24,492 bases of DNA from Penicillus capitatus (Eukaryota; Plantae; Chlorophyta), in contig OZ287708.1 of the NCBI GenBank assembly GCA_965649825.1, positions 734,880-759,371 on the forward strand, written 5' to 3'. The translations under genes and the position numbers were made by a program. Below, piece by piece: positions 1 to 23,599 of the stretch; positions within the stretch are counted from its first letter, which is position 1; each line of letters opens with the position of its first letter. The notes beneath the pieces were generated by a model. That model ran no database searches. It had not been told where the DNA came from and saw only the letters and a program-made list of their open reading frames with translations.

Positions 1-639
1 ACTCACTCATCAGGCGGCAGAATGAGCTTAAGCCCAGTACCGCAAGGTGCACTGCGCAGACAGTTCGAAGAGGAGATCGTTCGTCTGGCGCACCTCTCTT
101 TAGAGCACGTCGCCTGCTGTAGACGACAAGCAACGACCCTCTGTTTTGCGACGGGCGATCGTTCTGTCGGCCGTTCTAAGTGACACCCTGCCGTTTCGAA
201 TCGACTGGCAAGCTGAAGGGGCGACCTACAGCCGCTCAAGAGTTCGGCACACCGCCGGGGCCCTTGTCTCTCGCTCCCCCGGAACAACTTCGTCGACGCA
301 GCCACCACTAATCTGTTCTCATCACCAGCACACCTGCGGAATCTCAGGCGCTGCGAGGACACCCGTCACTGGAGTGCTTGCCTCTCGACAGAAGCGCAAC
401 ACCGTAGTGTTACATACAGGGGCAGCAGCGCGACTCACGAGATCCTCGCCAGATGTCCATCCACGGTCCTGCGGCACGACGCGCTTGCTGCGCTTCGGAA
501 CCTGAGTCGACGGCGTCTGCTCCAGTAGTCGCCGTGTTCGTCTGTCAGCAAAGGCAACTGCAGCGAAGAGATCAGTGAATGCCAGAAATCTTCGGCCAAG
601 CAAATAGCGACGAGCTTGACGATGGCATGCGTTCTGCAG

Positions 640-896
640 AACCGACTACAATATTCGAAAAGGGTCGAGGATATAGCGATCGGTCGTCGAATAGTAACCC
701 GCACGCGATGAATGTAATAGAAACAGATTTCAACTGTTGACAGCGCATGTAGAAAGGTCATTCTTTACTTTAAAAAAGTGCGATGTCGAGCGAAACATTG
801 ATAGAACGGTAGTACGCGAAGGATAAGATGCACCTCGCAACAAAGCCAGCAGAGAAAGGGTAAGAAATTGCAACTTCACGAATAGAGAACTTGCGG
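640..896. other. Conserved, comparatively A/T-rich non-repetitive block abutting array A (leader-like)
   Basis: Alignable by eye to ~12580-12835 (e.g. AAAAAAGTGCGATGTCGAGCGAAACATTG vs AAAAAGCGAGATGTCAAGCGAAACGTTG). Ends in a 17-nt identical junction immediately before the first array unit. No reading frame is shared between the copies. Confidence 0.75.
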
Positions 897-3800
897 TCGG
901 CGACTTCGGTCTCCAATGATCGTCAACGCGGCAAGTAGACGACCGCCGCCTTGCATCCACGGCAAGGCGGCAAATAGACGACAGCCCCCTCGTATCCTCG
1001 ACGAGGTGCAGGTAAGTCAGCTGCAGCGTCCAGGCAGTAGGACGACATGTAAGGCGACCGCCGCCTCACATCCACAGCGAGGCGACAAGTAGACGACAGC
1101 CGCTTCCAATGAACTCCAGGCCGATAGATAAGACCACTTCGGCCTCCGGGCTTTAAGGTCGTAGGCTGTGCGACAGCCGCCTCGCATCCACGACGAAGCG
1201 GCAAGTAAGACGACTTCGGCTTCAATGCAGCAAATAAGACGAGAGCCGCCTCGCATCCAAGGCAAGGCGACAGGTAGATCGACTTCGGCCTCCGGTCTTC
1301 AATGTCGCAGGCAGTGCGACAGCAGTCTCGCATCCACGGCAAGGCGGCAAGTAGACGATAGCCGCCTCGTATCCTCGACGAGGCGGCGAGTAAGATGACT
1401 TCGGCCTCTGATCAACTCCAGGCCGACAGGTAAGAAGACCGCCGCCTTGCATCGACGGCAAGGCGGCGAGTAAGACGACTGCAGCGTTCAAGCAGCAGAG
1501 CAGCAGGTAAGACGAGAGCCGCCTCGCATTCATGACGAGGCAGCAAGTAGGTCCACTGCGGCCTTCAGTGATCTCTAGGTCAAGGCAGCAAGTAAAACGA
1601 CTTCGGCATCCGGGCTTCAACGTCGCAGGAAGTGCGACAGCCGCCTCGCATCTACGGCGAGGCGGCAGGTAGGTCGACTGCGGCATTCAGGCTGTAGAGC
1701 AGCAGGTAAGGCGGCCGCCGCCTTGCATCCACGGCAAGGCAGCAAGTAGACGACTGCCGCCTCCAATGAACTCCAGGTAATGACGGCAAGTTTGCCGACA
1801 GCCGCCTCGCATACATGACGAGGCAGCAGGTAGGACGACTTTGGTCTCCGGGCTTGAACGTCGCAGGAAGTGCGACGGCCGCCTCGTATCTACGGCGAGG
1901 CAGCAGGTAAGATGACTTCGGCATCCAAGTCGCAGGTAAGGCGACAGCCGCCTCGCATCCACGGCGAGGCGGCAAGTTTGCCGATATCCGCCATGCATCC
2001 ACGGCAAGCGGCGAGTAAGACGACAGCGACATCCAGGTCGCAGGTGGGACGACAGCGGCCTCCTGTTGTTTCCACGGAGGCAGGTCTCGCGAATGCCGCC
2101 TCGCATCCACGGGCGAGGCAGCAAATAGGCGACTGTCGCCTCCAATGATCTCAGCGGCGAGGCGGCAGGTAAAACGACAGCCGCCCCGAATACACGGCAA
2201 GGCGGCAGATGTGATGAGTTCGTCTCCGAGCATCCAGGTCGCCGGGATGGCGACAGCCGCCTCGCATCCACGGCGAGGCGGCAAGTTAGACGACATCCGC
2301 CTCCAGTTGTCTTGAGGAGGCAGGCATGACGACCGCAGCATCCGGGCATCGAGGCAGAAGGTATGACGAATGCCGCCTCGCTTCTACGGCGAAGCGGCAA
2401 GCATGTCCACTGCCGCCTCCAATGATCGTCAATGCGGCAGGTACAACGACTTCGGTCTCCGGGCTTCCAGGTCGCAGGAAGGCAACAGCCGCCGTGCATC
2501 CACGGCGAGACAGCAAGTTGCTCGACTTCTTCCGCAGATCAACTCCAGGCCGACAGGTAAGGAGACCGCCGCCTTGCATCGACGGCAAGGCGGCAAGTAG
2601 ACGACTGCCGCCTCACATCCTCAACGAGGCGGCAGGTAGGTCGACTGCGGCCTCCAGGCAGTAGAGCAGCAGGTAAGGAAGCCGCCGCCTCGCATTCACA
2701 ACAAGGCAGCTAGTTGGTCCACTGCGGGCTTCAATGAACTCCGGGCCGATAGATAAGGCGACTTCTTCTTCCGGGCTTCATTGTCGCAGGTAGTGCGACA
2801 GCCGCCTCGCGTCCACGGCGAGGCGGCAAGTAGGTCCACTGCAGCCTCCAGTTGTCTTCAATGAGGCAAGTATAGCGTCAGCCGCCTCGCATTCACAGCA
2901 AGGCAGCTAGTTGGTCCACTGCGGCATTCGGTGATCTCCAGGTCAAAGCGGCAAGTTTGCCGACAGCCGCATCGTATCCTGGACGAGGCAGCAGGTAAGA
3001 AGTCTTCGGCCTCCGGTCTTCAAGGTCGCAGGCTGTGCGACAGCCGCCTCGCAGCTATGGCGAGACAGCAGGTAAGACCACTTCGCCCTCCGGTCATCCA
3101 GGTCACAGGCAAGACGACCGCCGCCTCGCATCCACGGCAAGGCGGCAGGTAGATCGACTGCGGCATCTAGGCTGTAGAGCAGCAGGAAGACGACTCCGAC
3201 CTCAGATCAACTCCAGCTCGCAGGTTTGCCGACAGCTGCCTCGCATCCACAGCGAGGCAGCACTTAAGTCGACAGAGTCCTCCAGTAGTCTTTAGGACGA
3301 CAGGTAAGGCGACTGCCGCATTGCATCCACAGCGAGGCGGCAGGTAGATCGACTTCGGCCTCCTGTCTTCAATGTGGCAGGTAGGTCGACAGACTCCTCA
3401 AGGAGTCTTCAGGACGACAGGTAAGGCGACCGCCACCTCGCATCTCCGGCGAGGTGGCATTTAGGTCGACAGAGTCCACCAGTTCGCAGGTTTGCCGAAA
3501 GCCGCCTCGCATCCACGGCGAGACGGCGAGTAAGACGACTCCGACGTCTAGGCTTCCAGGTCAAGGCGGCAAGTAGGCGACTGCCGTCTCCAATGATCGT
3601 CAACGCAGCAGGTAAGGCGACAGCCGCCTCGCATCCACGACGAGGCAGCGGGTATGACGACTACGGCATCCAGGTCGCAGCCTATGCGACAGCCGCCTCG
3701 CATCCAAGGCAAGGCGGCAAGTTGACGACAGCCGCCTCGTATTCTCGACGAGGCAACAGGTAAGACGACTTCGGCTTTTGTTCTTAGAAGTCGCAGGTTG

Positions 3801-4384
3801 TGCGACAGCCGCCTCGCATCCACGGCGAGGCGGCAGGTATGACGACTTCGGTCTCCGGGCTTCCCAGGTCGCAGGTAGGTCGACCGCCGCCTCGTATCCA
3901 CGGCAAGGCGGCAAGTAGGACGACTGCGGCCTTCGGTGATCTCCAGCCAAGGCGGCAAGTAGGACGACTGCGGCCTTCGGTGATCTCCAGCCAAGGCGGC
4001 AAGTAGGTCGACTGCGCCATCCAGGAAGTAGATCAGCAAGTAGGTTGACAGCCGCCTCGCATCCACGGCGAGGCGGCAAGTAGGTTGACTGCTGCCTCAC
4101 ATTCACGACGTGGCGGCAGGTAAAACGACTTCGGCATCCGTGTCGCAGATAGTGCGACAGCCGCCTCGCATATCCGGCGAGGCGGGGCGTAAGACGACTG
4201 CTGCATCCAGGCAGTAGAGCAGCAGGTAAGGCGACCGCCGCCTCGCATCTATGGCGAGGCAGCAGGTAAGACCACTTCGCCCTCCGGTCATCCAGGTCGC
4301 AGGTTAGGCGACCGCCGCCTCGCATCCACGGCGAGGCGGCAGGTAAGTCTATAGACGCCTCCAGTAATCTCCAAGAAGTCGGCA
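897..4384. repeat. Mosaic tandem array A: core GCARGTARRNCGAC plus variable module, with roughly 40 hairpin units GCCGCCTCGC-ATCCACG-GCGAGGCGGC
   Basis: Read directly from the sequence. 10-bp inverted repeats with a 7-nt loop (e.g. 945-971, 1361-1387) are separated by recurring modules such as TTCGGCCTCCGGGCTTCAAGGTC, TGCGGCCTCCAGGCAGTAGAGCA, TCCAATGATCGTCAA and AGATCAACTCCAGGCCGA. Unit count is by eye. Confidence 0.95.
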
Positions 4385-5100
4385 GGTGGAAAGAGCTGCA
4401 GCCTCTAGTCAGTAGACGACAGGTAGATAGACTAGGCAGCCTCCAGTCAGCATACGGCAGGTGGAAAGAACTGCAGCTTCCAGTCAGTACGGCAGCATGT
4501 AGAGAAACTCGGCAGCTTTCGATGAGCAGACGGCATGTTAGGATACTCCAGTCTTGAGGCGGTAAGACAAGCAGGTAGGACACGGCAGCTCCGCACAGGA
4601 AGATCGACGGGTGGCATCCTCTGGACAGCAGAAAGCAGGTAAGACACGGCAGCTTCAAGCAGCAAGCCAACAGGCGGGATCCTCCGGGCAGCAATACAGT
4701 GAGTCGGACACTCCAGACTCTGTGCATCAAAACGCCAAATAGGACGTGGTAGCTCCAGGCAGCAGGTAAACAGACAGTCCAGCCTCCGGGCACCAAAAAT
4801 GTCAAGTCGAACGACGCCAGCAGCCATCCCAGGTAAAACAGAGAGTGCGTGGGACAGTCCAGCCTCCGGGCAGTAAAACGACAGATCAGGACCAAAACAC
4901 CTCAGTACATCAAAACAGAAAATAATACGACCACAGGCCTCTCCACACAGGAAACACCAATCAGGGAAACGGCAGATCTCATATATGGCAAGGCAGCAGG
5001 TAAGACAGCAGCATCCAGTCAGCAAGGCAGCAGGTAAGACACAACGGCTTCTGGACAGCAAAACGAGAAATCGGGCATTCCAGATCGGAAACTCGAGCCG
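4385..5100. repeat. Degenerate gene-proximal sub-array A (units like CAGCCTCCGGGCAGCAGGTAAGACAC, no hairpin)
   Basis: Recurring CAGCCTCCGGGCA / CAGCTCCAGGCA / CAGGTAAGACAC motifs. Shares the CAGGTAAGAC core with the main array and shares longer words with 15690-16690 (e.g. GGATCCTCCGGGCAGCAATACAGTGAGTCGGACACTC). Confidence 0.85.
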
Positions 5101-5169
5101 CTACGTAAGAAAAGCTAACACACAGCCATCCACAACAGAGCGAAGGTGGAATGGCGGAAACATCAAGAA

Positions 5170-5252
5170 AAGAAAACAGCCCTAGATCTTTTTGTATTTT
5201 TAATTTTGCAGTCGGAAAGAAAACAGCACCATGAACGAGAAGAAAGATGCCC
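5170..5252 (-). terminator. Possible 3' end / polyadenylation region of orphan gene A
   Basis: The minus strand downstream of the stop is U-rich, then carries an A-rich tract with ATTAAA (plus-strand TTTAAT at 5199-5204). Copy B has an equivalent A-rich tract. Inference only. Confidence 0.35.
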
Positions 5253-6448
5253 TTAGGCAGACCAATCTTCAACATAAACCTACACCACAAGCACATTAGC
5301 AGAGAGAAGGATACAAAAAGTGACTTACACATTGGCCCGATAAAAAGAAAAGCCGCTCTGGAATTGCGGGGCCCACGGGCACACACTGGCCGGAGAGAAA
5401 AAACGGCCGGGGAGGGATGCCAAGGGGACCTACTGAGAAGATGAAGGGGCGTAGGGGGATTGGAGGTGGAGACGAGCGAAGGGAAAAGACAGAAGTGCGC
5501 ACAGGAAAGGGGGGCGGGAAGAAAGGAAAGGAAAACTTAAACAACCGTGAAGGGATGGTAGGAGGAGGGGAGGCTGGTATACAGAAGACTTGCGGGCGAA
5601 CGGGGAAGAGTGGTGGCCTGGTTGGCTGGGTGGTGGGAGGAGACATCGTCGCGGTTGGCTGCGGGGAGGAACATGACGACCACTCCATGTCGGCTGAACA
5701 GGGCAGCTGAGATGATGCCGGAGAAGGCGCGGCAGGTTGGGCATGAGGTGGACCGGCTGGCGGCGCAGGCGACCACGCCATGGGCGGCGGCGAGCTCGTC
5801 TGGGTTGCTGCTGGCTGTGGTGGGGACGACTGGCCCGGAGGAGGATCGGCTGAAGCTTCGGCTTGCGGCGGCGGCGGCAATGATGTCTGCGGCTGGGAAG
5901 TTGCAGACGGCGGTGCGGGGCGCGCCGGAGGCGGCGGAGCAGCAGGCTGGCCCTGTTGGGCCAACCGCGCTCTCCTGTCCTCGGAGGACAGGACCCTCGC
6001 CCGCCGCACGGGCCGAGCCTGAGCGGTTTGGTCCCTATTGGGACCAAACCGGACAGGAGGGGTCTGCTCATCGAGCACCTGTTGACCCCTGAGAGCGGTC
6101 GTCTGGGTCTTGAGGTCCCAGAACAACCGCTCTCTCTCGGCCTCGGCCATCCCCTCGAAGGCCCTGGGCGGTCTGTTGCCCAGGACCTCCGCCAGTGTCA
6201 CCTGAGCAAACCTACAAGACACACAGAGGTGAGAGACCTGTCGACGAACAGGTCAACCGCGCGGTCTCGCAAGCAAGTGACCGCATGCGTTCGGACTGCG
6301 TGCTGGACGCATGCATGCCCACAGCAAGCGTCCACCGCCGCAGTCGAGGAGCTCCGAGGCGCGCGACTCGTCGAAGCGTGGGGCAGAGGACTTACGGCTT
6401 GCCAGGATAGCCGTAGTCATCTTCGGTGCTCATTCTGGCGTCGGCCAT
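5253..6448 (-). CDS. Three-exon orphan gene, copy A, 320 aa: MADARMSTEDDYGYPGKP|FAQVTLAEVLGNRPPRAFEG...Pro-rich linker...IPERLFFLSGQC|VYVEDWSA*
   Basis: Exons 6448-6396 (53 nt), 6211-5329 (883 nt) and 5279-5253 (27 nt) sum to 963 nt, in frame. Intron 1 is 6395-6212 (184 nt; GTAAGT...CTCAC...TCTTGTAG). Intron 2 is 5328-5280 (49 nt; GTAAGT...CTAAT...GTGTAG). The same structure occurs in copy B, with mostly synonymous differences. No recognisable family. Confidence 0.88.
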
Positions 6449-6533
6449 CGTCTTGAAAGTCGGTCGCCAAGGAAAGCAGCAAAGGTCGCAGAAGGCAGAA
6501 GCAGAACTCGGAAACTCGAGTGCTGAAGGCTCA

Positions 6534-6573
6534 GCGACAGGACCTTTATAGGCCGCCTCGGTTGCCGAGCGCG
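6534..6573 (-). promoter_or_regulatory. TATA-containing core promoter of orphan gene A
   Basis: Minus-strand TATAAAGG (TATAAA at 6550-6545), about 100 nt upstream of the ATG, lies within a 40-nt stretch identical in copy B while the flanks differ. Confidence 0.75.
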
Positions 6574-6770
6574 ACCTGCTGGTGGCGGCTGCTAACTGTC
6601 GCCGTTTGGCGGCACCTGCATCCGCCGACGGACAAGGGAATCGTCGCCAGACGTCCAGAAACGCAGAATTCTTTGACCGGAGTACGCGCCGCGAACGGGA
6701 GAGCGCTTCTGGATACTTTGCTAGGAGTTTTACAGGGGAAGCTCTTTACAGTTTGTCGCCATTCTACTCA

Positions 6771-7200
6771 CTGAGTGTAACGCGCATGCGTTCTCTGCGG
6801 CCTCTCCGACGCGATTCTCCGAACGGCGAACCGTCCGAAGTCAGCTCCGCGTTGCCCGGGCAGAGGAACGAGGCGGACGTTCTCGTTGGCAGGATCGGCA
6901 CGGACTCTACGTCGAGACGGCTGTCTATTGCGGGCGTCTCCGTCGCAAACGCCGTCGAGGGGACGTTCTGCGCGGTGTAACGCGAGTCGGTTTGAGGAGT
7001 TGCCGTTGGCCCTAACTCCCTCGAACATGGAAGGCGGAACAGAACGGCCGGCCATCTGCGACAACCAGACGGCCGCGGAGACGCCGTTTCAGTTCCCGTT
7101 CGCGCACAGCGTCGAGGGAGTGTCTTTGAAGACGCCGGTCGCTCCGATCAATAAAGTCTGTCGCGTTTTGCGTCTGCTGTGCAGGACTGTCGTTCTGTCT
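6771..7200. other. Highly conserved upstream block A, function unknown
   Basis: Ungapped and roughly 90% identical by eye to 18302-18640, then decaying. GTGTAACGC occurs twice exactly 200 nt apart in both copies. A short minus-strand ORF (6768-7064) is shared, with a mixed synonymous/non-synonymous signal. Confidence 0.7.
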
Positions 7201-9115
7201 GCGAAGCTATCCAGTAGGACTGTTCTCGAGTACAACCTGTGTATAGGCGCTGTTGAACGCGGCCGAGGCTAGTTGCCATCCAGTGCCATCGCCTTCTTTC
7301 TTTCCGGCGTATTCCACAGTGCAGAGTGCGCCAAAGAGGCAGGGTGTCATTGAAGGGGTGGTATGCTGCTGCATCCTCATTGGAATCCTCCGTGCCGTTC
7401 CATTCTAGTGTCTGGCGGGTTCTGAGGTTGTGAGGGCTGTGACGGAGATCGTCTGTCTTCTGTTCGGAGAGCAGTTGTCGGAATTCTCTGCAGAGGAAGA
7501 CGAACAAGTGCCGCCGATTGCTCTGAGTGCGTGGGGCGTTCTAGGACGATGTTGTCATTGATGGCGATTCTACTGTAGGGTAAATGCTCTGTGGAATGCA
7601 CGAACGACAGACACTGTAGAAACGCCTGCTCTTGGCTCCGCCATTTGGACTGGTGATTCGGCACTTCTCACAGAACACCGAGATGCATGTCAACGTCGAC
7701 GCGTTGGATCGAATCCGAAGGATGCATTCGCGCGACAAAGCGTCCTCAAGAACGGTGCGAGAGAACACACATTGACTGATGCGTCTGCAGACGGTAAAAC
7801 GATTTCGGATGCGAATGTCTGTTCGCGATGAATGGGCGCGCCAACAGAATGCGACTGTCCACTCCTCGTTGTTTTGGTCGGCAATTCAACAGGAGACAAA
7901 AGGGGACGACACCAGTCGTGGATTCAGTCCCCACCCCACCGACGCATCCACGCGAGCTCAGTGCTCAGAGGACTGATGTATGTGGATTCGATGCGCGAAT
8001 GCGTCTCGCGTATTCTGCGTTGCCACCACAGTGCGTCATTCTAGACTGCGGCAGTTGCCCTACCGTCGGTTTCATCGACTTCCTCGCTACTTTCACTGAT
8101 CTCTCAACACATCCATCCACGGAATGCGCTGTTCGCTTGAACATTTTATGCTTTACAGTCGTGTTCTTCAGTTTAAGTCCTAGTCGTTCTTGCCGTCTAT
8201 CATCTGTGCTTGCTGTTCAGAAAGCAGTATCCTGTCCAGAGAAAAGATCTAAATCTATCATTGTGCAACAGATGGTCGACGAAGAAGGTGATCTCTCTCT
8301 TCGCCGAACAACAGATTGTACTCTTTACGACGCGACAGCAAGATGCCTGAGTTGCGTCACATTCCTAGCTCAGGACAGATCGCTCATGGGCGTGACTAGG
8401 TGCCGTTTTATTGAGGTATCGATCGATCACTGGGCGGAGCATGAGGAAAGAACGAGCTCTGAACACGGGACGTGCGTCACCGGCCATCGCCACAGTTATG
8501 CTCTTGGCGAGAAATGCTTCATTCTCGATCCTTGTCTTCGAGCATTTTGAAGAGATTCATCAGGCGTTGCATTACGGTCGGCGCCAGCGTCACGGACTTC
8601 TTCCGAGCGGCGGCATCTCTCCGTGACGCCCCCGGCACCAGCCACCCTGTGCTTCTTGCCTTTCAGTGCTGCCGCTGCGGTCTTACGTTCTGCAGGCGTA
8701 TCAGGTCGACGAAGTGGCAACACCTCCTGCGCTGGAAGCATGACGATTGCCCAGAGAATCAGAAGCCATGCTCACGCGAAGGACACACGATTACACGTCC
8801 GCGCCAACATCCGCCACTCTCATGCTCGTCTGCATCAGACCATCAGCAATCTTCCTGTGAGAGGCAACGAGAAGCCTTCGGTACACCGCACGCGTTGAGT
8901 TCTCACCCTTCACCTGACCGAGTGTGTGGCTGCAGCTGGTCGTGAATCACTTTAAGCAGAGACGCCACCTGGTGTGGCAATGACTGGAATGAGGGAGGTG
9001 GTTGAATGGCTGTCGTGGTGCAGATGACGGAGTATGTCGATACCATGGGAAAGCAAAAAATCACTGTCAGGAAATCGACGGACTCGCTTTTCCTGCAGCA
9101 ATTCTACCAATCGAA

Positions 9116-9952
9116 CTACGCCCGTCGCAAAGAGCCGCTGTCATGAGGCAGTTCCACTGAACAATGGACACTGTGTCTGTCTGCCGGTCGTTCGACGAGT
9201 GCGCGGCTGTAAGGAAACAGACGTCCTGAACGTCCCTTTGACATTACATCGAGACACGGATTGTTTTTCGCGGCAGACGAGAAACGTCGGACGCCATCTC
9301 CGATACGACTGGATCCATCACGTCCTCCACGACACACGCACGCGTGATGTGGAGCGGGAGGCCCCTTCGCGAAATCGAGCGGCCGTCGCTGCGTCTTCCG
9401 CCTGGACAAGGACGACAGAGATCTCCATCCGAGAGCCGTGTCGTCAAAGAGAGGCAGAGGTAATTTCAGAACGAAGGTCCTGTTGATGATCATCGTTCTG
9501 GGACCGATGCCCTTGAGGATCTGGCATGTCTCGTCGAGGCACAGTTCCAGCAGCACCGTGCCGTCTTCCGTGCGAAACACCATGTGTCCCGCATCGTCCG
9601 GCGCTGCGCAAAGGCAGATGCGTCCATCTGCCAGTGCCTGCGGCGGCCAGGGCCACCGCACTTGGCACAACTGGACAGAAGCCGTCCGCGAGAGACGCTG
9701 GTCTCTGTCGCGACAGCCCTCTACAGCCAGCAGACACAACACACTTGCCATTTGCCGCTGTTCTTCGGAGCGCTGTCCGCGACCTGTGCCTGGCGGAGAT
9801 GCTATATCTGCTGTGCCGCCCCTGATTCGAACGCTCTTCTCGTCTCTTCTCTCCCCGGAGTCGTCACGTTGACACGCGCGTTTCCGCGTCTGCGTCTGCG
9901 CGAGAGCACGGACAATGGGGAATGCGAGTCCGCCGCCGAGCGCATTGCCCAA
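9116..9952 (-). other. Unassigned 278-codon ORF, possibly a gene remnant
   Basis: Longest non-repeat ORF in the window. Its central part (GRICLCAAPDDAGHMVFRTEDGTVLLELCLDETCQILKGIGPRTMIINRTFVLKL) has protein-like alternating beta-strand patterning. No family recognised and the start codon is not ATG. Confidence 0.25.
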
Positions 9953-11233
9953 TTACCCTCGCCGGAGAACGAACTCGCTCGGCCGCCTGAGACACACCAG
10001 CGACAGGTGGTGACTCCTGCATGTCCTCATTGGGTTCTGGATGCTTGTCATTGGTCCCGAAGATGGCGGAGGCGTCTGAGACGATCTTGCCGGGTCTCAT
10101 GCGCGATCCCTGAATGACGCCTTTCAGAAGGACGACACCGATGCTGTCCTGCGATTCGCGACGCTCTTTCTGCCTCTGGAGAAGCGAGAAGACGGATCTC
10201 AGCTCCGGGGATTTAGAATGCGAGTGGCACGTACGCTTCAGGAGGCTTACCAAAAGCTCTCGGCGGCGTCAGAGTCGCGCTCAGCAGCTTCGCCCTTTGT
10301 CGGCCGTCTTTCAGATCTCCTTCGTTCTGTGGCTGTCGCGGTCGACAGCCATCAACAGCAGGTTTGGACGCCGTCGTGTACGCCATCCACACGTAAGACG
10401 CCAGACGGCAGGTTTTCGCGGATGCATCTGGCAAAGATGCTGCCATGCACACGGTGCTGCACCTGCACGGTGAATGCGATCCGTACGGATGCCGCGTCTT
10501 GAAGAGATCTCCGGAAGATCGAAACCCGAAGAGCATCGTTCAAGACATCAGTCTACGCAGAAAGAAGGAACCCAGTCAGTACCTAACGAAACGTCGGCGC
10601 TTCTCATTCGAACTGTTTGTCAAACAACAGGCGCCGTCGGCGGAGCCGCTTCCATCCTGGATCCAAGAAACGCGGAAACGACTTTGCCTGAGATACTGTG
10701 TCTGGTGCGTCGCCGCGAGGAGTGCAACGATCTCACGACGAACAGAGTGCTTGACGTCTCGCGTCCACATCCTCCAACACCGTCCAAGTCAGATCCAGTG
10801 TCCGGCATTATCTCTGAACCCGAATCCCAGGTTATCCAACCTGTGCGAAAGTCGAATAGGGTTGGCTCAGTCGTGAACTGTCCGGCTATCGTGTCACCCA
10901 TGAAGGAGGTTCTAGGTGGAACCTAGATAACGTCAAGAAAGCCATCAGCATCAGCAAGCAGGCCTGCCTCGGTAGGGCTTAGGGGTGGGAGGCGGATAGC
11001 TATCAGATTTCTGGCAGCTTGGTGACCTCTGCGGCGGGCGATGTCTTCTTCATCTTCCTTAAGTGCAATGCGCGCTATCTCTTCGCACGACGTCCCTTGT
11101 GTCTGTGCCGTGATGTCGTTGATGCACAACCTTTGACGAAAGAGTGCTTTGCCGCGCTGCAGAAATCAAACAACAACGGACCGACATCCTTCTTCCTCGA
11201 CGCCGTCCTTTCCGACCAATCGGTCTAATACTA

Positions 11234-12046
11234 TGAGTGCCATACACAGAATGGAATCAAGGATAGCAGGCCGGAGAGGAAGTTCAGTTGTTCAGTCAGT
11301 TTCTGAAGAATTTGCGCTTTTCTTTACTCAAGTCTGAACTTCGAGGCGCGCATCGCAGACGCGTTTCGGATCCCGAACGAAAGGGAAATCGCATCTTCGC
11401 TTTTGGTCGCGCTTCGAGAACAAGAGAGTCGACATTTGGAGCGAGAAGAGTGTGAATCGGCAGATGATCTGCAACGATGGTCAGGGGCCTTGAGCGTCTG
11501 CTTTCTGCCAAGAGTGGCCATCTTAGCGACGCCATGATGGCAAAGCTCATGTCAGTGTGGCAAGAGAACGCAAGTATGGACTGTCGACTCAATGAGAGGA
11601 CGTTCGAGCGACTCGCCGAAAGCGAGACCTGGGCCCGTCGCATTGTCGCCGCTGTTCGCAGATTGTCGACAGCTCTCGAGGCAGCGTTCGTCCCCGACAA
11701 CCACTCGGAGGTCACGCGCTCGCTTCTCCGGAAAGGGAAGAGACTGTACCGCTTTGTGCAGATCCTGAATCGCGTGCTGCAGTCCTCTGTCTCCAGACGT
11801 GAAGCCTACTTTATGAAGAAGACGTTTTGTCAGTTAGGAGGCCTGCAGTTCGACAGAGACATCCGACTTCCACTTTCGCACTTCTCCGAGATCTATCAGA
11901 TCTCTGTCCGAGAGAGACTCGCACGTCTGACGCAGATGGCTACCATTTTGTGCTTCGAGAGCGTGGAGCAGATACTGGACTACCGGGAGATAAAGGAGAG
12001 AGCATCAACTGGCGATCGAGTCCAGTCGAAATCGAAACCATTCTGA
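11234..12046 (+). pseudogene. Frameshifted remnant of an unidentified helical protein gene
   Basis: Protein-like segments in successive frames (MSAIHRMESR...FFTQV / FEARIADAFRIPNEREIASSLLVALRE...DLQRW / VRGLERLLSAK...QMATILCFESVEQILDYREI). No family recognised. Confidence 0.3.
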
Positions 12047-12579
12047 AACTGCGCCGCGATTATAACGAGGCCGACATCCCAGCCCTGCTGCTTTGACAAT
12101 GCTTTCTGTCCCGTTTCTCGTGCTTGATGACGACGCGAGTCGACGTCAAGAGATCGATCGAACGTTGCAGCGCCTGGAGGAACTGCGGGCACAACAAGAA
12201 CAGAATACCAAAGCCTGTCACGATAGGTCGGTGTACACACGACAGCTGTCTCGGCCATTTAGGTCCCTGTGAATGCGGCCGGATTCTTTGAAGTCCGGTG
12301 CTGCAAGCAGAACGTGTTTTCGTCGATCTTGGCCGTCAATACGTGGCAGAGTGCTCGGCAGATCAAGCCGAGGCCATTCCTACACGCAGCCGACATTTCC
12401 CTGCGTTTCCCTCTCTGTCGTGAATCCGGCAGGAATGACTAGCTCGCAACAGAGCCATCGGAGAAAACATGCATATCTAAAGAAGCCGATGCGCGCCAAG
12501 AGAGTGGAGCAGCCGTCCAAGCCATGCGTCTTCCCTTAGAAGATGGTAACGAGCTTCACGATGAGACCCGCCTGAACAA

Positions 12580-12835
12580 CGCCCACAGCAATAGTCGGGA
12601 ATGCGTCGACATCTAGCGTTCCGTCGCCGGCTCGTAACTCGCTCTCGACGAATGTTAAAGAAATGGAACTCGACTGTTTACAACGCTTGTAAAAAATGTC
12701 ATTTTTTCTTCAAAAAGCGAGATGTCAAGCGAAACGTTGTCAAAAAGTGATTCGCGAAGGATAGAATGTATAATCACCACAGAGTCTGTAGAGAAAGAGT
12801 AAGAAAGTGCAATACCGTGAATAGAGAACTTGCGG
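12580..12835. other. Conserved A/T-richer leader-like block abutting array B
   Basis: Homologous to 640-896. Ends in GAATAGAGAACTTGCGG (12819-12835) directly before the first hairpin unit. Confidence 0.75.
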
Positions 12836-15689
12836 CAGCGACAGCCGCCGCGCATCCACAGAGAGGCGGCAAGTAAAATATGACTCTGGCCTTTGGTCTT
12901 CAAGGTCGCAGTCTGCGCGACAGCCGCCTCGCTGTGGATGCGAGGCGGCAGGTAGATCGACTTCGGGCTCCGGACATCCAGGTCGCAGTAGTGCGACAGC
13001 CGCCTCGCATTTACGGCGAGGCGGCAGGTATCACGACTACGGCCTCAGATCAACTCCAGGCCGACAGGTAAGGCGACTACGGCCTTCAACGGCCTCCATG
13101 TCGCAGGAAGGCGACAGCCGCCTCGCATCCACGGCGAGGCGGCAGGTAAGACGACTTCGGCATCCAGCTCGCAGGTAAGAAGAGAGCCGCCTCGCATCCA
13201 CAACGAGGCAGCAAATAGGCGACTGTCGCCTCCAATGATCTCAGCGGCGAGGCGGCAAGTAGGTTGACAGCTGCCTCACATTCACGACGTGGCGGCAGGT
13301 AAAACGACTTCGGCATCCGTGTCGCAGATAGTGCGACAGCCGCCTCGCATATCCGGCGAGGCGGGGCGTAAGACGACTGCTGCATCCAGGCAGTAGAGCA
13401 GCAGGTAAGGCGACCGCCGCCTCGCATTCACGGCGAGGCGGCAAGTAGGACGACTGCGGCATCTAGACGTAAAGGTCGCAGGTGGATCGATAGCCGCCTT
13501 GCATCCACAGCGAGGCGGCAAGTAGGACGACTGCGGCATCTAGACGTAAAGGTCGCAGGTTGATCGATAGCCGCCTTGCATCCAGGGCGAGGAGGCAGGT
13601 ATGACGACTGCGACCCCGATCGGCGAGGCCGCAGTTTTAGCGACAGCCGCCTCGCATCATCCTTTGTAAGGCGGTAGGTATGTCGACAGACTTCTCCAGG
13701 AGTCTTCAGGGCGGCAGGTAGGACGAGAGCCGCCTCGCATATGCGCCAAGCGGCAGGTAAGACGAGAACCGCCTCGTATTCTCGACGAGGCGGCAGGTAG
13801 ATCGACTTCGGCATGCTTTAAGGTCGCAGGCTGTGCGACAGCCGCCTCGTATCCTCGACGAGGCAGCAGGTAAGACGACTTCGGCTTTTGGGCTTAGAAG
13901 TCGCAGGTTGTGCGACAGCCGCCTCGCATCCACGGCGAGGAGGCAGGTATGACGACAGCGGCATCCAGTTGTCCTTGAGGAGGCAGGTATGACGACTGCA
14001 GCATCCGGGCATCCAGACAGCAGGTACGACGACGGCCGCCTCGCATCCACGGCGAGGCAGCAAATAAGCGACTGTCGCCTCCAATGATCTCAACGGCGAT
14101 GCGGCAGGTAAAACGACAGCCGCCCCGAATACACGGCAAGGCGGCAGATGTGATGAGTTCGTCTCCGAGCATCCAAGTCGCAGGTAGTGCGACAGCCGCC
14201 TCGCATCCACGGCGAGGCAGCAGGTAGGTCGACAGACTCCCCCAGGAGTCTTCAGGACGACAGGTAAGGCGACCGCCGCCTCGCATCCACGACGAGGCAG
14301 CGGGTAAGATGACTCCGAACTCAGATCAACTCCAGGCCGACAGGTAAGGCGACTACGGCCTTCAACGGCCTCCAGGTCGCAGGCAGTGCGACAGCCGCCT
14401 TGCATCCACAGCAAGGCGGCAGGTAAAACGACTTCGGCATCCAGTAGTCTTCATGACGACAGGTAAGGCGACAGCCGCCTCGCATCCAAGGCAAGGCGGC
14501 AAGTAGACGACAGCCGCCTCGTATCCTCGACGAGGCAGCAGGTAAGACGACTTCGGCTTTTGGGCTTAGAAGTCGCAGTTTGTGCGACAGCCGCCTCGCA
14601 TCCAAGGCAAGGCGGCAGGTATGACGACTTCGGTCTCCGGGCTTCAAGATCGCACGCAGGCAGTGCGACAGCCGCCTCGCATCCACGGCGAGGCGGCGAG
14701 TAAGACGACTGCAGCGTTCAGGCAGCAGATCAGCAGGTTAGGCGGCGGCTGCCTTGCATTCACAGCAAGGCAGCAAGTAGGTCCACTGCGGCCTTCGGGC
14801 TTCCCAGGTCGCAGGTAGGTCGACCGCCGCCTTACATTCACAGCAAGGCGGCCAGTAGACGACAGGCTCCTCGTATTCTCGACGAGGCGGCAGGTAAGTC
14901 AGTTGCAGCGTCCAGGCAGTAGGGCGACAGGTAAGGCGACCTCCGCCTCGCATCCTGAGCGAGGCGGCTAGTGAGTCGACTGCGGCCTCCAGTTGTCTTC
15001 AGGGCGGCAGGTAGGACGAGAGCCGCCTCGCATATACGCCAAGCGGCAGGTAAGACGAGAGCCGCCTCGCATATACGCCAAGCGGCAGGTAAGACGAGAA
15101 CCGCCTCGCATTCACGGCGAGGCGGCAGGTAGATCGACTTCGGCTTTTGGGCATCCAGGTCGCAGGCATTGCGACAGCCGCCTCGCATCCATAGCAAGGC
15201 GGCAGGTAAGTCGATAGACGCCTTCAGTAATCTCTAAGGCGAGGCAGCAAGCAGGCGACTGCCGCCTCGCATATACGGCAATGGGGCAGGTAGGACGAGG
15301 GCCGCCTCCAGTGATCTCCAAGTCAACGCAGCAAGTTGGCGACAGCCGCCTCGCATACACGACGAGGCGGCAGGCAAGACGACTACGGCATCGGATGATC
15401 GTCAAAGCGGCAGGTAGGACGAGAGCCGCCTTGCATCCACGACAAGACGGCAGGTAGGACGACTGATGTATCCGGGCATTGATGTCTCAGATATTGCGAC
15501 AGCCGCCTTGCATCCACGGCAAGGCGGCAGGCAAGACGACTACGGCATCGGATGATCGTCAAAGCGGCAGGTAGGACGAGAGCCGCCTTGCATCCACGGC
15601 AAGACGGCAGGTAGGACGACTGATGTATCCGGGCATTGATGTCTCAGATATTGCGACAGCCGCCATGCATTTACGGCAAGGCGGCGGCA
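12836..15689. repeat. Mosaic hairpin array B (roughly 35-40 hairpin units)
   Basis: Same unit vocabulary as array A in a different order. Internal tandem duplications have periods of 77 nt (13441/13518), 39 nt (~15012-15090) and 157 nt (15365/15522). Confidence 0.95.
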
Positions 15690-16690
15690 GGTAGATAGAC
15701 ACAGTAGCCTCCTGGCATCAAAAACGCCGAATCGGACGTGGCAGCCTCCCAGGCGTCAGAACTCTAGCTTCCAGTCAGCAAGGCATCAGGTAAATAGACG
15801 CGGCAGCCTCCGGACAGCAGACGGCAGGTCAGGGCACTCCAGCTTCCAGGTGGCAATCCGACAGGTAGGGCGACAGCGGCCCCCATCCACAGCGAGGCCG
15901 CAGGTAGAACGAGATCGACTGCGGCCTTCATCTACATTACGCAGCAGGTAGACTGACTAGGCATCCTCCAGTTAGCAGACGGTAGGTTTGGACACTCAAA
16001 CCTCCAGGTGGCAGGACAACCAGTCCGGACACGACAGCTCCGCGCGGCAAGACCAGCAGGTTGGATCCTCCGGGCAGCAAAAAGCAAGACACGGCAGCTC
16101 CAAGCAGCAAGACTGCAGATGGGATCCTCCGGGCAGCAATACAGTGAGTCGGACACTCAAGCCTCCGGGCATCAAAACGCCAAATCGGAAGTGGCAGCTC
16201 CAGGCAGTAGGTAGAAAGAACTGCAGCCTCCAGACGGCAAGGAAGCAGGTAGAAACACATGGCAGCCCTCGGGGCAGCAGAAAACATGTTAGGACACTCC
16301 AGTCTCCAGGTGGCAAGACAAGCAGATCGGATTCGGCAGTTCCAAGCAGTAAGACAACAGGCAGGGTTCTTCCGGGCAGCTAAATAGGTAAAAGGCACTC
16401 AAGCCTCCGGGCAGCAGGCAGACTGACTAGGCATCCTCCAGTCAGCAGACGGTAAGTTTGGACAGTCCAGCCTCCAGATGGCAAGACAAGCAGGTAAGAC
16501 ACGGCAGCTCCAAGCATGTAAAACAGCAGATGGGATCCTCCGGGCAGCTAAACAGGTGAACAGGATGGGCAGCCTCCAGTCAGCAGAAATGACAAGTAGA
16601 ACGACGCCAGCAGCCATCCGAGGTAAAACAAAGAATGAAACACTCCAGCCTTAGGGCGAGCAAAACAGCAGATCAGGCAACGACAGCCTC
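15690..16690. repeat. Degenerate gene-proximal sub-array B
   Basis: Recurring CAGCCTCCGGGCAGC, GGACACTCCAG, CAGACTGACTAGGCATCCTCCAG and GGATCCTCCGGGCAGC words; homologous to 4385-5100 but longer. Confidence 0.85.
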
Positions 16691-16835
16691 CGTGTAAAAA
16701 CAGTTGACACAGCCATCCACAGCAAAGCGTAGGTGGAATGGCGTAAACAGTAACAAAAAAACAGCCCTACCTCTTTTTGTTTTTTTTTCAAATTATTCAG
16801 CTCAAAAAAGAAAACAGCGTCCGAAAAAAAGGCCC

Positions 16836-17997
16836 TTAGGCAGACCAATCGTTGATATAAACCTACACAAAAAGCACGTTAACAGAGAGAAAGAATAGAA
16901 GAATGACTTACACATTCGCCCGACAAAAAGAAAAGGCGCTCAGGAATTGCAGGACCCAGGCTAAGACACTCGCCAGATAGGAAATACGGTCTAGGCGGGA
17001 TGCCAGGATACCTGACCGAAAAGATGAAGGGGCGAGGGGGGATTGGAGATGGGCAGGGAAGGCAAAACTTAGAGGTGCGTGCAGGAAAGAGAGGTGGGAA
17101 AAAAGGGAAGGAAAATTTAAAAAGGCGCGAAGGGATCGTAGGAGGAGGGGACGCGGGTATGCAAAAGACCTGTGGACGAGGGGGGAAGAGCGGCGGCTTG
17201 ATGGGCTGGGCGGTGGGAGGGGACATGATCGCTGTAGGCTGCGAGGAGGGACAGGATGACCAGTCCATGGCGGCTACGCACGGCGGCTGCGATGATGCCA
17301 GAGGTGGCGCGTGCGACCACTCCATCTGCGGCGGCCCGGCCGGCTGGGATTGAGGAGGAGCGTCTGCCGCCACGGCTGGCGGTGCTCTCGGCACTGAGGC
17401 TGCTGGTATCTCGGATGAAGCCGGAGGTGGGCACGGCTGCGGCGAAGATGTCGGCTGCTGAGATGCTGCAGGCGGTGGTGATGCAGGCTGTGCGGGAGGC
17501 GGAGGAGCAGCAGGCTGGCCCTGTTGGGCCAGCCGCGCTCTCCTGTCCTCCGAGGACAGGACTCTGGCCCGCCGCATAGGCCGAGCCTGTGCGGTTTGGT
17601 CCCTATTGGGACCAAACCGGACAGGAGGGGTCTGCTCATCGAGCACCTGTTGACCCCTGAGAGCGGTCGTCTGGGTCTTGAGGTCCCAGAACAACCGCTC
17701 TCTCTCGGCCTCGGCCATCCCCTCGAAGGCCCTGGGCGGTCTGTTGCCCAGGACCTCCGCCAGTGTTACCTGCGCAAACCTACAAGACACACAAGGGTCA
17801 GAGATGTCTCGAAGAGCAGACGCGCCGCGCGCTACGGGGCTTCTCGACTGCAGCCGGACGCATGCGTGCGCATGAAAAGCGTTCTGGCCGCAGTCGAGGA
17901 GCTCCGTAGCGCGCGGCGCGTCGAAACATGGCCAGTGGACTTACGGTCGTCCCGGATATCCGTAATCATCCTCGGTGGTCATGTACTCGTCAGCCAT
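16836..17997 (-). CDS. Three-exon orphan gene, copy B, 315 aa: MADEYMTTEDDYGYPGRP|FAQVTLAEVLGNRPPRAFEG...IPERLFFLSGEC|VYINDWSA*
   Basis: Exons 17997-17945 (53 nt), 17779-16912 (868 nt) and 16862-16836 (27 nt) sum to 948 nt, in frame. Intron 1 is 17944-17780 (165 nt; GTAAGT...CTGAC...TCTTGTAG). Intron 2 is 16911-16863 (49 nt; GTAAGT...TTAAC...GTGTAG). Intron positions and phases match copy A. Confidence 0.88.
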
Positions 17998-18063
17998 TGT
18001 CTTCGTCGTTTGCGCTCGGAGAAAAAACAGAAGAAACTCGAAACTCGAGTGCAGAAGGTCTGC

Positions 18064-18103
18064 GCGACAGGACCTTTATAGGCCGCCTCGGTTGCCGAGC
18101 GCG
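18064..18103 (-). promoter_or_regulatory. TATA-containing core promoter of orphan gene B
   Basis: TATAAA at 18080-18075 on the minus strand, about 83 nt upstream of the ATG; identical to 6534-6573. Confidence 0.75.
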
Positions 18104-18301
18104 GCCTGCGGGTGGCGGCTGGGAACCGTGGCCGTTCGGCGGCGCCTGCATGCGCCGCCGGACAAAGAAACGGCCGCCAGACATCCGGAAACGCAGGATG
18201 CTGCCGTCGGGATGCGCGACGCGAACGGGAGAGCGCTTCTAGAAGCTTTGCAAGGAGTTTTACAGGCAGGATTCTCTACAATTTGTTCGGCATGGACCTC
18301 T

Positions 18302-18730
18302 CTGAGTGTAACGCGCATGCGTTCTCTGCGGCCTCTCAGACGCGATTCTGCGAACGGCGAACCGTCCGAAGTCAGCTCTGCGTTGCCCGGGCAGAGGAAC
18401 GAGGCGGACGTTCTCGTCGGCAGGATCGGCACGGACTCTACGTCGAGACGGCCGTCTGTTTCGAGCGTCTCCGTCGCAAACGCCGTCGAGGGGACGTTCT
18501 GCGCGGTGTAACGCATGTCGGTTTGAGGAGTTGCCGTTGCCCCTAACTCCCTCGAACATGGAAGGCGGAACAGAACGGCCGGCCTTCTGCGACAACCAGA
18601 CGGCTGCGGAGTCGCCGTTTCAGTTTGCGCTCGCGCAAAGCGTCGGTAGACTGTTTCGGAAGTCGCCGGTCGCTCTGGCAAACGAAGTTCTATCGCGTCT
18701 CACATCGGCCTGACAGACTCGTCTGTCTGT
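18302..18730. other. Highly conserved upstream block B
   Basis: Homolog of 6771-7200; GTGTAACGC at 18306 and 18506. Confidence 0.7.
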
Positions 18731-18741
18731 GTAGTCATTGA

Positions 18742-23339: not shown

Positions 23340-23599
23340 CCTTTGCTCCACTTGGACACCGAATGAACTCTGCCTCCGTTTGGAGACGCCGTAAACCGAC
23401 CGTCGAAGCTGTCGTCGGGCAACGAAGCCGGTACGCCTCGAACTCCTCATCAGTGGGCGTCGATCTGCTGCGAGATTCGCACCGAGGAGCTCGTTAGAGG
23501 CGTCCCGACAGATCTCTCGAGCAGAAACAGACCACACGATTTACAGAGGTCTCTCTTCGAGGAGTCATCGCGGTCCTATTGCCTTCGGAAGTCCTTAAC

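Follow-up and report, generated by a model that had tools for sequence, protein, structure and literature searches.

An orphan gene family of Penicillus capitatus with a downstream minisatellite inherited alongside the gene

The stretch of Penicillus capitatus DNA analysed here (the window, 24,492 nucleotides) is nuclear DNA and carries two copies of a small gene family, each followed by a long array of short repeats. The GMPPB of this genome has its nearest counterpart in the green alga Caulerpa. Our results support that the array is inherited with the gene and retained as a unit with it, because in 17/17 evaluable gene copies (the window plus 12 related loci, which represent two metagenome samples and at least three related genomes) sense-oriented repeats with the core TGGAGGCTGTCG were found directly downstream of the gene, past an A-rich island. 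The sequence-only reading, in which gene and array travel and are maintained as one unit, thus held for joint inheritance, and the co-occurrence of gene and array on which it depended was found in all evaluable copies; its alternative outcome, that only these two copies exist, did not materialise. The part of that reading that invoked a mobile element was not supported, as neither terminal inverted repeats (TIRs) nor target-site duplications (TSDs) were found, and the multiplication of the module is best read as segmental and tandem duplication accompanied by gene conversion, not transposition.

Two modules with a conserved gene and its cis elements

Self-BLASTN and boundary-block alignment bore out the presence of two modules in the same orientation (610–7144 and 12549–18675), both ordered as boundary block, hairpin array, unstructured repeat zone, minus-strand gene, TATA box, and upstream block. 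The main matches paired 5869–7144 with 17434–18675 (85%), 5120–5731 with 16707–17311 (79%), and 4485–4787 with 15935–16231 (79%). The distal boundary blocks (610–904 and 12549–12842, minus strand), previously described as a leader, aligned end to end at about 72%; seen in the orientation of the gene, the block is a trailer beyond the array. Only the closely related loci L002–L004, of 9x coverage, have it again (76–97% identity), and it was not found in more distant paralogs.

The gene is encoded on the minus strand, and the arrays are therefore located downstream (3') of it. It consists of three exons separated by GT-AG introns and has an uninterrupted reading frame in each copy (320 and 315 aa), so the claim that it is intact in each module was upheld. 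Exon 1 of copy 1 (6396–6448, MADARMSTEDDYGYPGKP) presents a GTAAGT donor and is followed by a 184-nt intron, and its variation among 13 copies was 0.15, 0.46, and 0.15 at the three codon positions. Exon 2 (5329–6211) showed in the family alignments a conserved N-domain, a variable Pro-rich middle, and a conserved Pro/Phe-rich C-domain, and exon 3 (5253–5279) encodes VYVEDWSA and a stop, the spliced coding sequence of 320 aa having no internal stop. The corresponding exons of copy 2 were placed at 17945–17997 (by comparison and the spliced coding sequence), 16912–17779 (by family comparison, dN/dS, and the spliced coding sequence), and 16836–16862 (by the spliced coding sequence), all on the minus strand. 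Every paralog has a short, stop-terminated exon 3, with stop codons that differ among paralogs. The gene is real and under purifying selection, as indicated by dN/dS values of 0.04–0.37 in the N-domain and 0.07–0.14 in the C-domain.

The family is small, orphan, and lineage-specific, with 25 matches among 1.84 billion representative proteins and 16 word-index matches; a Pfam profile search revealed no domain in its protein. This protein, of around 320 aa, is largely disordered (predicted model with a pLDDT of 58), its conserved N-domain being basic and helical, and it showed no signal peptide or surface-protein features. The coding sequences are old duplicates, with C-domain dS ranging from 0.9 to saturation. 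When copies 1 and 2 are compared, the N-domain has a dS of 0.12 and the C-domain one of 0.92, a difference that shows patchy homogenisation by gene conversion, with tracts in the upstream block and the gene's 5' half that do not extend to the array-adjacent 3' end.

Around the gene, a set of cis elements was detected in both modules, all of them on the minus strand. The TATA box (6543–6552 and 18073–18082) has the sequence CCTATAAAGG in both copies and is conserved in the 13-copy alignment. Next to it lies a conserved non-coding upstream block, at 6553–7144 in module 1 (by paralog and cross-species identity) and 18083–18675 in module 2 (by self-BLASTN and the 13-copy alignment), whose identity of 72–87% among paralogs and about 75% between species exceeds that of the intron and the 5'UTR. 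The copy alignment of this block showed no codon periodicity, indels that are not multiples of three, and stops in various frames, and no conserved RNA fold was found in it. After the stop codon there is an A-rich island (5182–5211, sense CTGCAAAATTAAAAATACAAAAAG; 16767–16800 by downstream alignment), which occupies the same position in 14/14 aligned copies, the other species included, was also present in L010, L011, and L095, and is a candidate poly(A)/cleavage region. Between this island and the array, a first hairpin (5125–5155, sense GCCATTCCAC-CTTCGCTCTGTT-GTGGATGGC; 16712–16742 by downstream alignment) is kept in all copies of sample ERZ25074695 in the downstream alignment.

Composition, structure, and turnover of the arrays

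The main hairpin arrays (905–4345 and 12843–15690, minus strand), delimited by TRF, repeat families, unit segmentation, and folding, are made of about 40–90 units each. These are head-to-tail units of about 37–44 nt (length mode 40 nt), often arranged as 77-nt dimers according to TRF and the repeat finder. In each unit, a hairpin of one of at least five types (A–E), mixed along the array, is joined to a constant linker (sense GTCGTCTTACCTGC). Each of the types A–E folded into a hairpin, with stems of about 6–11 bp. Both arrays share their unit types in a different order, in line with the earlier description of arrays that were kept yet reshuffled. Unit number and order also differ between close copies, and the downstream repeat behaves as a minisatellite. 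In the comparison of L002 with the window, flanks were 97.6–99.6% identical and array 1 aligned only piecewise, at 77–97%; the end of the C-domain and the start of the leader match were about 3.4 kb apart in L002, compared with about 4.4 kb in the window.

The main arrays were more stable than dinucleotide shuffles, with mean MFE z scores per 200 nt of −2.5 to −2.7 for array 1 and −3.0 to −3.5 for array 2, equal on both strands, and control regions near 0. Between them and the genes, two proximal degenerate zones on the minus strand, 4346–5105 (core CTGGAGGCTGCC / ACCTGC; TRF rows 4380–4495) and 15691–16700 (repeat family D13 and core consensus), were repetitive but unstructured (z > 0 against shuffles). 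Their core consensus is common to other paralogs and is the best-conserved motif part of the array.

Stems of the type-A units (138 unique) contained 1218 Watson-Crick cells, and 25 C-G pairs had changed to T-A on both sides, although these compensatory pairs may have arisen by copying from a few ancestral units. Non-Watson-Crick stem positions were G.U-compatible on the gene-sense strand in 84 cases vs 13 on the antisense strand (controls, 7 vs 10), and a further count gave 105 vs 25. As the sense C>T excess was also found at unpaired loop and linker sites (1.6- to 5.8-fold), this asymmetry can be largely mutational, indicating a process in the sense direction, not selection on RNA structure.

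Other classes of repeated hairpins were considered and rejected. A miRNA/siRNA cluster does not fit stems of about 6–11 bp, compared with the ~20 bp or more of Dicer substrates, and the array gave no Rfam match at the gathering score or at E ≤ 1. A CRISPR-like array was discarded because the variable segments come from a small set of recurring hairpin types, with no unique spacers, in a eukaryotic context with spliceosomal introns; no Cas-related Pfam family was detected among the called genes of the 12 loci.

Across relatives, the independence of array and gene was assessed within gene-centred loci that total about 250 kb. The 12-nt core recurs every ~40 nt, over stretches from 150 bp (L011) to 4.7 kb (L006). 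Its density after most gene copies is 8–9 or more per kb and is lower in the short arrays; in the loci of the first sample it is located on the sense strand. Paralogs differ in the sequence of their arrays, and several of them (the window, L001_up, and L005) showed GC-rich hairpin units distinct in sequence; structure was weak or absent in others (L006_a, z = +1.6; L001_dist, z = −1.1).

Duplication history and possible role of the array

The window spans one exact 24.5-kb period of a tandem repeat of higher order, each period containing the two modules, a COG4 fragment, and a TMEM14 gene: in L002, base 1 of the window adjoins base 24492, and the order recurs in L003 and L004. The COG4 C-terminal exon (11477–12046, plus strand; Pfam COG4_C, E = 1.6e-15) is convergent with gene copy 2 and belongs to the 24.5-kb repeat, outside the module. 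No further COG4 domain was detected in 10 plus-strand ORFs scanned between 6886 and 10926, and the L004 copy is frameshifted and split over two ORFs. The TMEM14-family ORF (22992–23537, minus strand) is intact, with a Tmemb_14 domain covering profile positions 2–91 of 92, and it also adjoins family members in L002, L005, and L007. The surroundings had been described as decayed gene relics, which needs correcting for TMEM14; of COG4, one C-terminal exon is recognisable and a sister copy is frameshifted.

Upstream homology ends at different points depending on the paralog (about 7116, 7978, 8580, 9894, and 18604–18747 in window coordinates), so sharp ends common to all copies did not emerge. The absence of visible TIRs and TSDs was confirmed at the ends of both modules, where the best inverted match (9) did not exceed chance (shuffle mean 7.5–7.8, maximum 13) and no direct repeat was found outside. 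No transposase, RT, or HUH domain was detected by Pfam among the called genes of the 12 loci (about 250 kb), nor did a longer, enzyme-carrying version appear among them. Variable homology ends, co-copied TMEM14 and COG4, tandem copies, and the lack of TIRs, TSDs, and transposon domains argue for segmental and tandem duplication with gene conversion, with which common flanking genes, tandem layout, and mosaic identity are consistent. A non-autonomous or unknown-class mobile element with a passenger gene and an internal satellite would account for the spread of copies over several contigs and for their opposite orientations within one of them, and internal tandem arrays are known in some non-autonomous transposons; with neighbour genes co-duplicated, the local layout being a 24.5-kb tandem higher-order repeat, and neither ends nor enzymes of such an element, we regard it as the least probable of the readings considered.

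The explanation that we favour, with a confidence slightly above even, is that of a gene family with a fixed cis shell and a downstream minisatellite, multiplied by segmental duplication, in which the array plays a cis role at the 3' end. Each member comprises an upstream block of about 600–700 bp, a TATA box, the three exons, the A-rich island about 40–60 nt past the stop, and then the ~40-nt sense repeats with the common core. Distant paralogs have 3–10 repeat units, and in the window lineage the repeats expanded to 3–5 kb and diversified into short GC-rich hairpin units of at least five types on a constant linker, with rapid gain, loss, and reordering of units through unequal exchange. The array most likely acts as a cis element at the 3' end of the transcription unit, in termination or as read-through RNA structure, as suggested by where it lies, the orientation it always keeps, its GU-rich core, the strand asymmetry, and the location of the next gene 0.3–1.5 kb beyond it; repeats of fixed orientation downstream of all 17 gene copies are what terminator repeats would look like. 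If transcribed in the direction of the gene, its GU-rich downstream elements and co-transcriptional hairpins could enforce 3'-end formation and termination ahead of the close next gene; alternatively, the transcript could carry the array as a long, structured extension at its 3' end. Against such a role, 3–5 kb far exceeds what termination should need, the length range among paralogs fits neutral expansion, and the proximal zones, best conserved in motif, are unstructured.

Some of these objections also feed the main rival, a neutral hitch-hiker, in which an ancestral slippage-prone 3' repeat was inherited by all duplicates and drifts without function. The 30-fold range in length (L011, 150 bp; L006, 4.7 kb), the fast turnover between near-identical haplotypes, a mutational bias able to account for the strand asymmetry, and unstructured repeats (proximal zones, L006_a, and L001_dist) all agree with it, but core, spacing, position, and orientation are kept in 17/17 copies across species despite saturated synonymous sites, a persistence unusually long for a minisatellite, while sequence-distinct GC-rich hairpins in several paralog arrays (window, L001_up, L005) and stem changes on both sides that preserve pairing are also hard to reconcile with drift. 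We consider it a serious possibility, although not the likelier one. An antisense non-coding unit, in which a promoter in the former leader would drive a plus-strand RNA through the array toward the gene, ending at the T-rich 5182–5211, could make use of the 5'-splice-site-like linkers (GCAGGTAAG) in which the array is rich, their nearly invariant GTA, the A/T-rich TATA-like stretch of a leader conserved between modules, and the T-runs that the A-rich island forms on the plus strand, preceded in some paralogs by perfect small hairpins. This seems unlikely, as leader conservation is limited to the closest loci, the L006 array lacks the GGTAAG linker and that of L001 has it only about once every 115 nt, the wobble asymmetry is about 6:1 toward the gene-sense strand, and no Rfam family matched even at E ≤ 1. 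Marginally less probable is an element acting at the DNA level, either a protein-binding array (possibly for the family's own product) or a hairpin/cruciform recombination or replication-barrier site promoting duplication and gene conversion. The oriented repeats with their conserved 12-nt core, the conversion and repeated duplication seen in the family, and the basic helical N-domain are compatible with it, but no DNA-binding fold or domain was detected in a mostly disordered model without Pfam match, and the conversion tracts lie in the gene's 5' half and its upstream block, away from the end next to the array.

Comparison with known systems

Repeat arrays attached to genes are known from several systems. 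In trypanosomes, upstream 70-bp repeats flank the cassettes of VSG antigen genes, and the family described here resembles them as a multigene family with an imperfect repeat array at each copy and gene conversion among copies, but its array lies downstream, the organism is very different, and the gene family showed no sign of VSG-like expression-site switching, surface-protein features, or signal peptide. The Xist A-repeat, with about eight copies of short GC-rich stem-loops and linkers in a defined lncRNA with known partners, is similar in its repeated hairpin plus linker at a scale of roughly 25–50 nt; in contrast, the arrays of the window hold about 40–90 mixed-type units and are known as DNA sequence, and no sequence or Rfam relationship with lncRNA modules of this kind was found.

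Intergenic spacers of rDNA hold oriented arrays, such as the Sal-box/TTF-I sites of mouse and the sub-repeats of Xenopus and plants. As in them, short repeats of fixed orientation are found here between the 3' end of tandem transcription units and the next promoter, changing fast by unequal exchange at a conserved position. Here, however, the repeats follow a protein gene of Pol II type that has introns and a TATA box, and the units are hairpins instead of a single protein-binding box. Finally, GC-rich minisatellites (VNTRs) are linked to the 3' side of some genes, such as the 28-bp VNTR downstream of the HRAS1 poly(A) signal and the 3'HVR of alpha-globin. The arrays share with these VNTRs their GC-rich tandem units of tens of bases just 3' of a gene, compositional strand asymmetry, interspersed variants, and fast change of unit number and order between alleles. 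In contrast to them, a single orientation and a single core are found in every paralog and also in a second species, and the arrays reach 3–5 kb, with several hairpin unit types on a constant linker.

The two modules and their protein gene

Self-comparison of the window, whose G+C content is 55–62%, revealed two same-orientation modules at positions 610–7144 and 12549–18675, each carrying, along the plus strand, a leader, a main hairpin array, a degenerate zone, a three-exon minus-strand gene, a TATA motif and an upstream block. Identity between the modules was 85% over the gene and upstream region (5869–7144 versus 17434–18675), 79% over the 3′ part of the gene and about 72% for the distal leaders (610–904 and 12549–12842). 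The sequence-only reading had described two modules with tandem hairpin arrays and repetitive degenerate zones, and this description was accurate; the array is also reshuffled between modules, as it had stated, with the order of unit types differing between array 1 and array 2. The scan of the window for tRNAs gave none, no Rfam match to the whole window was obtained at gathering score or at E ≤ 1, and the spliceosomal-type introns indicate eukaryotic nuclear DNA.

The gene lies on the minus strand, and thus the array is located downstream of it. Copy 1 (exons 6396–6448, 5329–6211 and 5253–5279) encodes 320 aa, and copy 2 (17945–17997, 16912–17779 and 16836–16862) 315 aa, with introns of the form GTAAGT...TAG. 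Codon periodicity was found in exon 1 (13 copies), and every paralog has a short exon 3 with a terminal stop, the stop codons being different among them. The dN/dS values were 0.04–0.37 for the N-domain and 0.07–0.14 for the Pro/Phe-rich C-domain. Judged from its sequence, this is a real, constrained protein gene. No Pfam domain was detected in its product, and the AlphaFold2 model of the exon-2 protein had a mean pLDDT of 58 and only two or three helices, which are N-terminal; most of the protein is predicted to be disordered. Its conserved C-terminal part consists of repeats of a short Pro/Phe-rich motif, as read from alignments. The second species has a conserved C-terminal coding region that is tandemly repeated, with 51–66-nt units (10414–11049, 10425–11060 and 8952–9168 in the metagenome loci L008, L009 and L010, respectively), so the 3′ coding end of the gene is also repeat-prone.

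The family is tiny, with 16 matches in a word-indexed search, all of them in ENA metagenome assemblies, and 25 matches in a profile search among 1.84 billion representatives. All the relatives lie on contigs of two ENA assemblies, ERZ25074695 (coverages of 36–41x, 24x and 7–9x) and ERZ26696514 (150–180x), and these contigs represent at least three related genomes. In a large protein collection, the neighbouring housekeeping gene GMPPB was closest to that of Caulerpa lentillifera (72%), followed by many chlorophytes (59–63%); on this one gene, the source is probably a green alga, perhaps an ulvophycean. COG4 matched metagenome sequences only, and the PDB matches of mtHSP70 and GMPPB pointed to no particular taxon. 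A coccidian genome with miRNA-like arrays was discarded in view of the COG4 and GMPPB matches. Literature searches for a described equivalent returned nothing relevant.

The upstream block, of about 600–700 bp and located upstream of the TATA (6553–7144 and 18083–18675), showed identities of 72–87% among paralogs and of about 75% between species, and it is conserved above intron, 5′UTR and synonymous sites. Two candidate natures of this block were rejected: protein-coding sequence, on account of its lack of codon periodicity, indels that are not multiples of three and variable stops, and a structured-RNA gene, with alifold z-scores of −0.4 to −1.9 in sense and +0.1 to −0.8 in antisense. The block is a conserved non-coding element and presumably a promoter.

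Oriented repeats beyond the stop codon

The two copies of the window are not the only ones, as tBLASTn identified 15 gene copies in the window and the related loci L001–L009, and three more were found in L010, L011 and L095. A conserved A-rich island follows the stop codon in 17/17 copies with enough downstream sequence. Beyond the island, sense-oriented repeats with the core GGA[GT]GC (in fuller form TGGAGGCTGTCG), spaced at about 40 nt, follow the gene in all 17 evaluable copies, in agreement with the co-occurrence of gene and array proposed by the sequence-only reading. Their extent ranges from about 150 bp (L011) to 4.7 kb (L006), and the TRF-negative L007 still has 12 cores in 1.7 kb. Array sequences vary among paralogs, with GGCGGCC-AGTGGA-GGCCGTC-type hairpins in L001, L006 and L095, and the core and a GTGGA-type loop recur throughout the paralog arrays. 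Among the arrays of the sampled loci that do not lie at a locus start, none was located elsewhere than downstream of a gene copy. The coupling of gene and array is general and, given C-domain dS values between about 0.9 and saturation, old.

Within the window, tandem units of about 37–44 nt, often forming 77-nt dimers, occupy the region between leader and gene. In each unit, a constant linker (plus-strand sequence GCAGGTAAGACGAC) is joined to a hairpin of one of at least five recurring types (A–E), of which type A, GCCGCCTCGC-ATCCACG-GCGAGGCGGC, is the commonest; the type-A unit (sense CGTGGATGCGAGGCGGCTGTCG) seems to be the core in a more elaborate form. Compared with dinucleotide shuffles, the main arrays have an excess of structure (z of −2.5 to −3.5 per 200 nt), control regions showed no such excess, and the proximal degenerate zones are repetitive, yet unstructured. 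The possibility that the array is coding sequence was rejected, given unit lengths of 37, 40 and 77 nt, which are not multiples of three; the long minus-strand ORFs found in the arrays are due to their A-poor composition. A scan of JGI metagenomes for two cores about 40 nt apart gave 83 loci, with no relative of the gene or of DNA from the window among them.

Several likenesses were observed in these repeats. The plus-strand linker GCAGGTAAGA (e.g., 1428–1436 and 1505–1513) is a near-consensus 5′ splice site, and its gene-sense form UCUUACCUGC resembles the 5′ end of U1 snRNA. The linker GTA is nearly invariant (138 units), and more distant paralogs have few or no copies of the linker motif in their arrays. 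In addition, the codons for the repeated MEWS/MAWS peptide motif in the variable middle of the protein (window 5700–5760, sense ATGGAGTGGTCGTC) resemble the array core TGGAGGCTGTCGT at about 11 of 13 bases by our own reading; the likeness may be fortuitous, or it may hint at an origin of the downstream repeat from duplicated coding sequence.

The departures from pairing in the hairpins are asymmetric between strands. Among 138 unique type-A units, 1218 stem cells were Watson–Crick and 25 carried both-sided C-G to T-A changes, and single-sided departures were G.U-compatible in 105 cases on the gene-sense strand versus 25 on the other. A motif-free hairpin scan of eleven arrays, including those of different sequence, gave 84 versus 13 in the same direction, and 7 versus 10 on control DNA. 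Sense C>T changes were also in excess at unpaired array sites, so the asymmetry is partly mutational; folding z-scores, equal on both strands, do not discriminate between them. The asymmetry points to a process running in the direction of the gene, which would most simply be transcription through the array.

Between the A-rich island and the array, a conserved hairpin is present in both modules (5125–5155 and 16712–16742). Inside the island itself, several paralogs showed one or more perfect small hairpins that are absent in the window, at about 20.5–20.7 kb in L001 and in the islands of L003, L006, L007, L008, L009 and L010 (e.g., L010 9389–9585). Such hairpins, with A-runs on either side, include ATCTCACAC-T6-GTGTGAGAT and GTCACAC...GTGTGAC; read in antisense, they take the form of a hairpin plus T-run, and they may represent terminator-like elements or small insertions. 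Of 14 ORF ends, only 9 had TGTAA, a poly(A) signal in other green algae, at a distance of 400 nt or less, some of these occurrences being possibly splice donors.

Duplication of the modules

One of the readings offered from the sequence alone was a mobile element, and this is not supported. No TIRs or TSDs were found at the modules, the end-point of upstream homology varies among paralogs, and TMEM14 and COG4 fragments were copied alongside the modules. Nor did a longer autonomous version carrying an enzyme emerge, as no transposon-type Pfam domain was detected in the called genes of 12 loci.

Base 1 of the window directly abuts base 24492 in the related 88-kb contig L002 (15385/15386), and in L003 and L004 the succession of TMEM14 region, gene 2, array 2, leader 2, COG4, gene 1, array 1 and leader 1 recurs at 80–94% identity. 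The window is thus exactly one 24.5-kb higher-order tandem period. The record itself is probably a repeat unit that was collapsed or circularised, or possibly an extrachromosomal circle, and not a true linear fragment; a 24.5-kb record with abutting ends can be a collapsed nuclear tandem repeat, not a plasmid or virus.

The two gene copies of the window differ by a dS of 0.12 in the N-domain (5938–6210 versus 17506–17778) and of 0.92 in the C-domain (5326–5616 versus 16909–17196), and their upstream blocks share 87–94% identity. This mosaic divergence indicates a gene-conversion tract that covers the upstream block and the 5′ half of the gene.

Regarding the neighbouring genes, COG4 can be recognised beside the modules by its C-terminal exon alone (window 11477–12046), and Pfam detected no further COG4 domain in 10 plus-strand ORFs across 6886–10926. 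COG4_C-like pieces were found on several contigs (proteins P0017–P0022), and the sister copy in L004 (2916–3487) is split into two ORFs, which is consistent with decaying partial duplicates carried by segmental duplications. On at least three different contigs, family members have beside them a TMEM14-family gene that looks intact (window 22992–23537; L002 16541–16888; L005 17354–17713; L007 5913–6233); it lies on the downstream side of one module and on the upstream side of another, and so was co-duplicated. In L001, mitochondrial-type HSP70 ORF fragments (15758–17243), some 2 kb past one paralog's array, adjoin a remnant of the COG4 3′ flank (15103–15491, 82% to window 12524–12136); they may be either relics or exons of an intact gene.

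Role of the array and related systems

On the evolutionary side, our results are firm: the gene belongs to an orphan family whose members share a conserved cis shell, the oriented repeat in its 3′ flank behaves as a minisatellite that, in the window lineage, expanded and diversified into hairpin units, and the spread took place through duplication, both segmental and tandem, and through gene conversion. As for its role, we favour one in cis, in which the array would act at the 3′ end of the transcription unit as a terminator/insulator or as structured read-through RNA. This is suggested by where the array lies, just past the putative poly(A) region, by its fixed orientation and GU-rich core, by the asymmetry in the sense direction and by the short distance to the next gene. 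The main rival is a neutral minisatellite inherited by descent. An antisense RNA unit, to be set beside an asymmetry that runs in the direction of the gene, is less likely, and so are a mobile element and a protein-binding or recombination array; a binding array had been the other option of the sequence-only reading.

The fuller claim that selection maintains the oriented hairpin array as a functional part of the gene, and that it is a previously undescribed class of Pol II 3′-end element (a multi-kb structured read-through RNA or a modular-hairpin terminator/insulator), kept with the orphan family through repeated duplication and across species as its sequence turns over, seems to us rather improbable. 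Were the coupling functional, it would provide a natural example of a long, modular, fast-evolving hairpin array defining the 3′ end of a protein-coding gene, with a bearing on the prevention of read-through between packed genes in compact eukaryotic genomes and on the recruitment and retention of minisatellites. If neutral, it would be a clean case of an orphan family, a conserved promoter block and a hypervariable minisatellite co-evolving by segmental duplication, higher-order tandem repetition and gene conversion.

The closest analogues are 3′-flanking VNTRs such as HRAS1 and the alpha-globin 3′HVR, together with the arrays of oriented terminators and sub-repeats in rDNA spacers. In contrast to both, the array described here accompanies every member of a protein-gene family and is built of modular hairpins.
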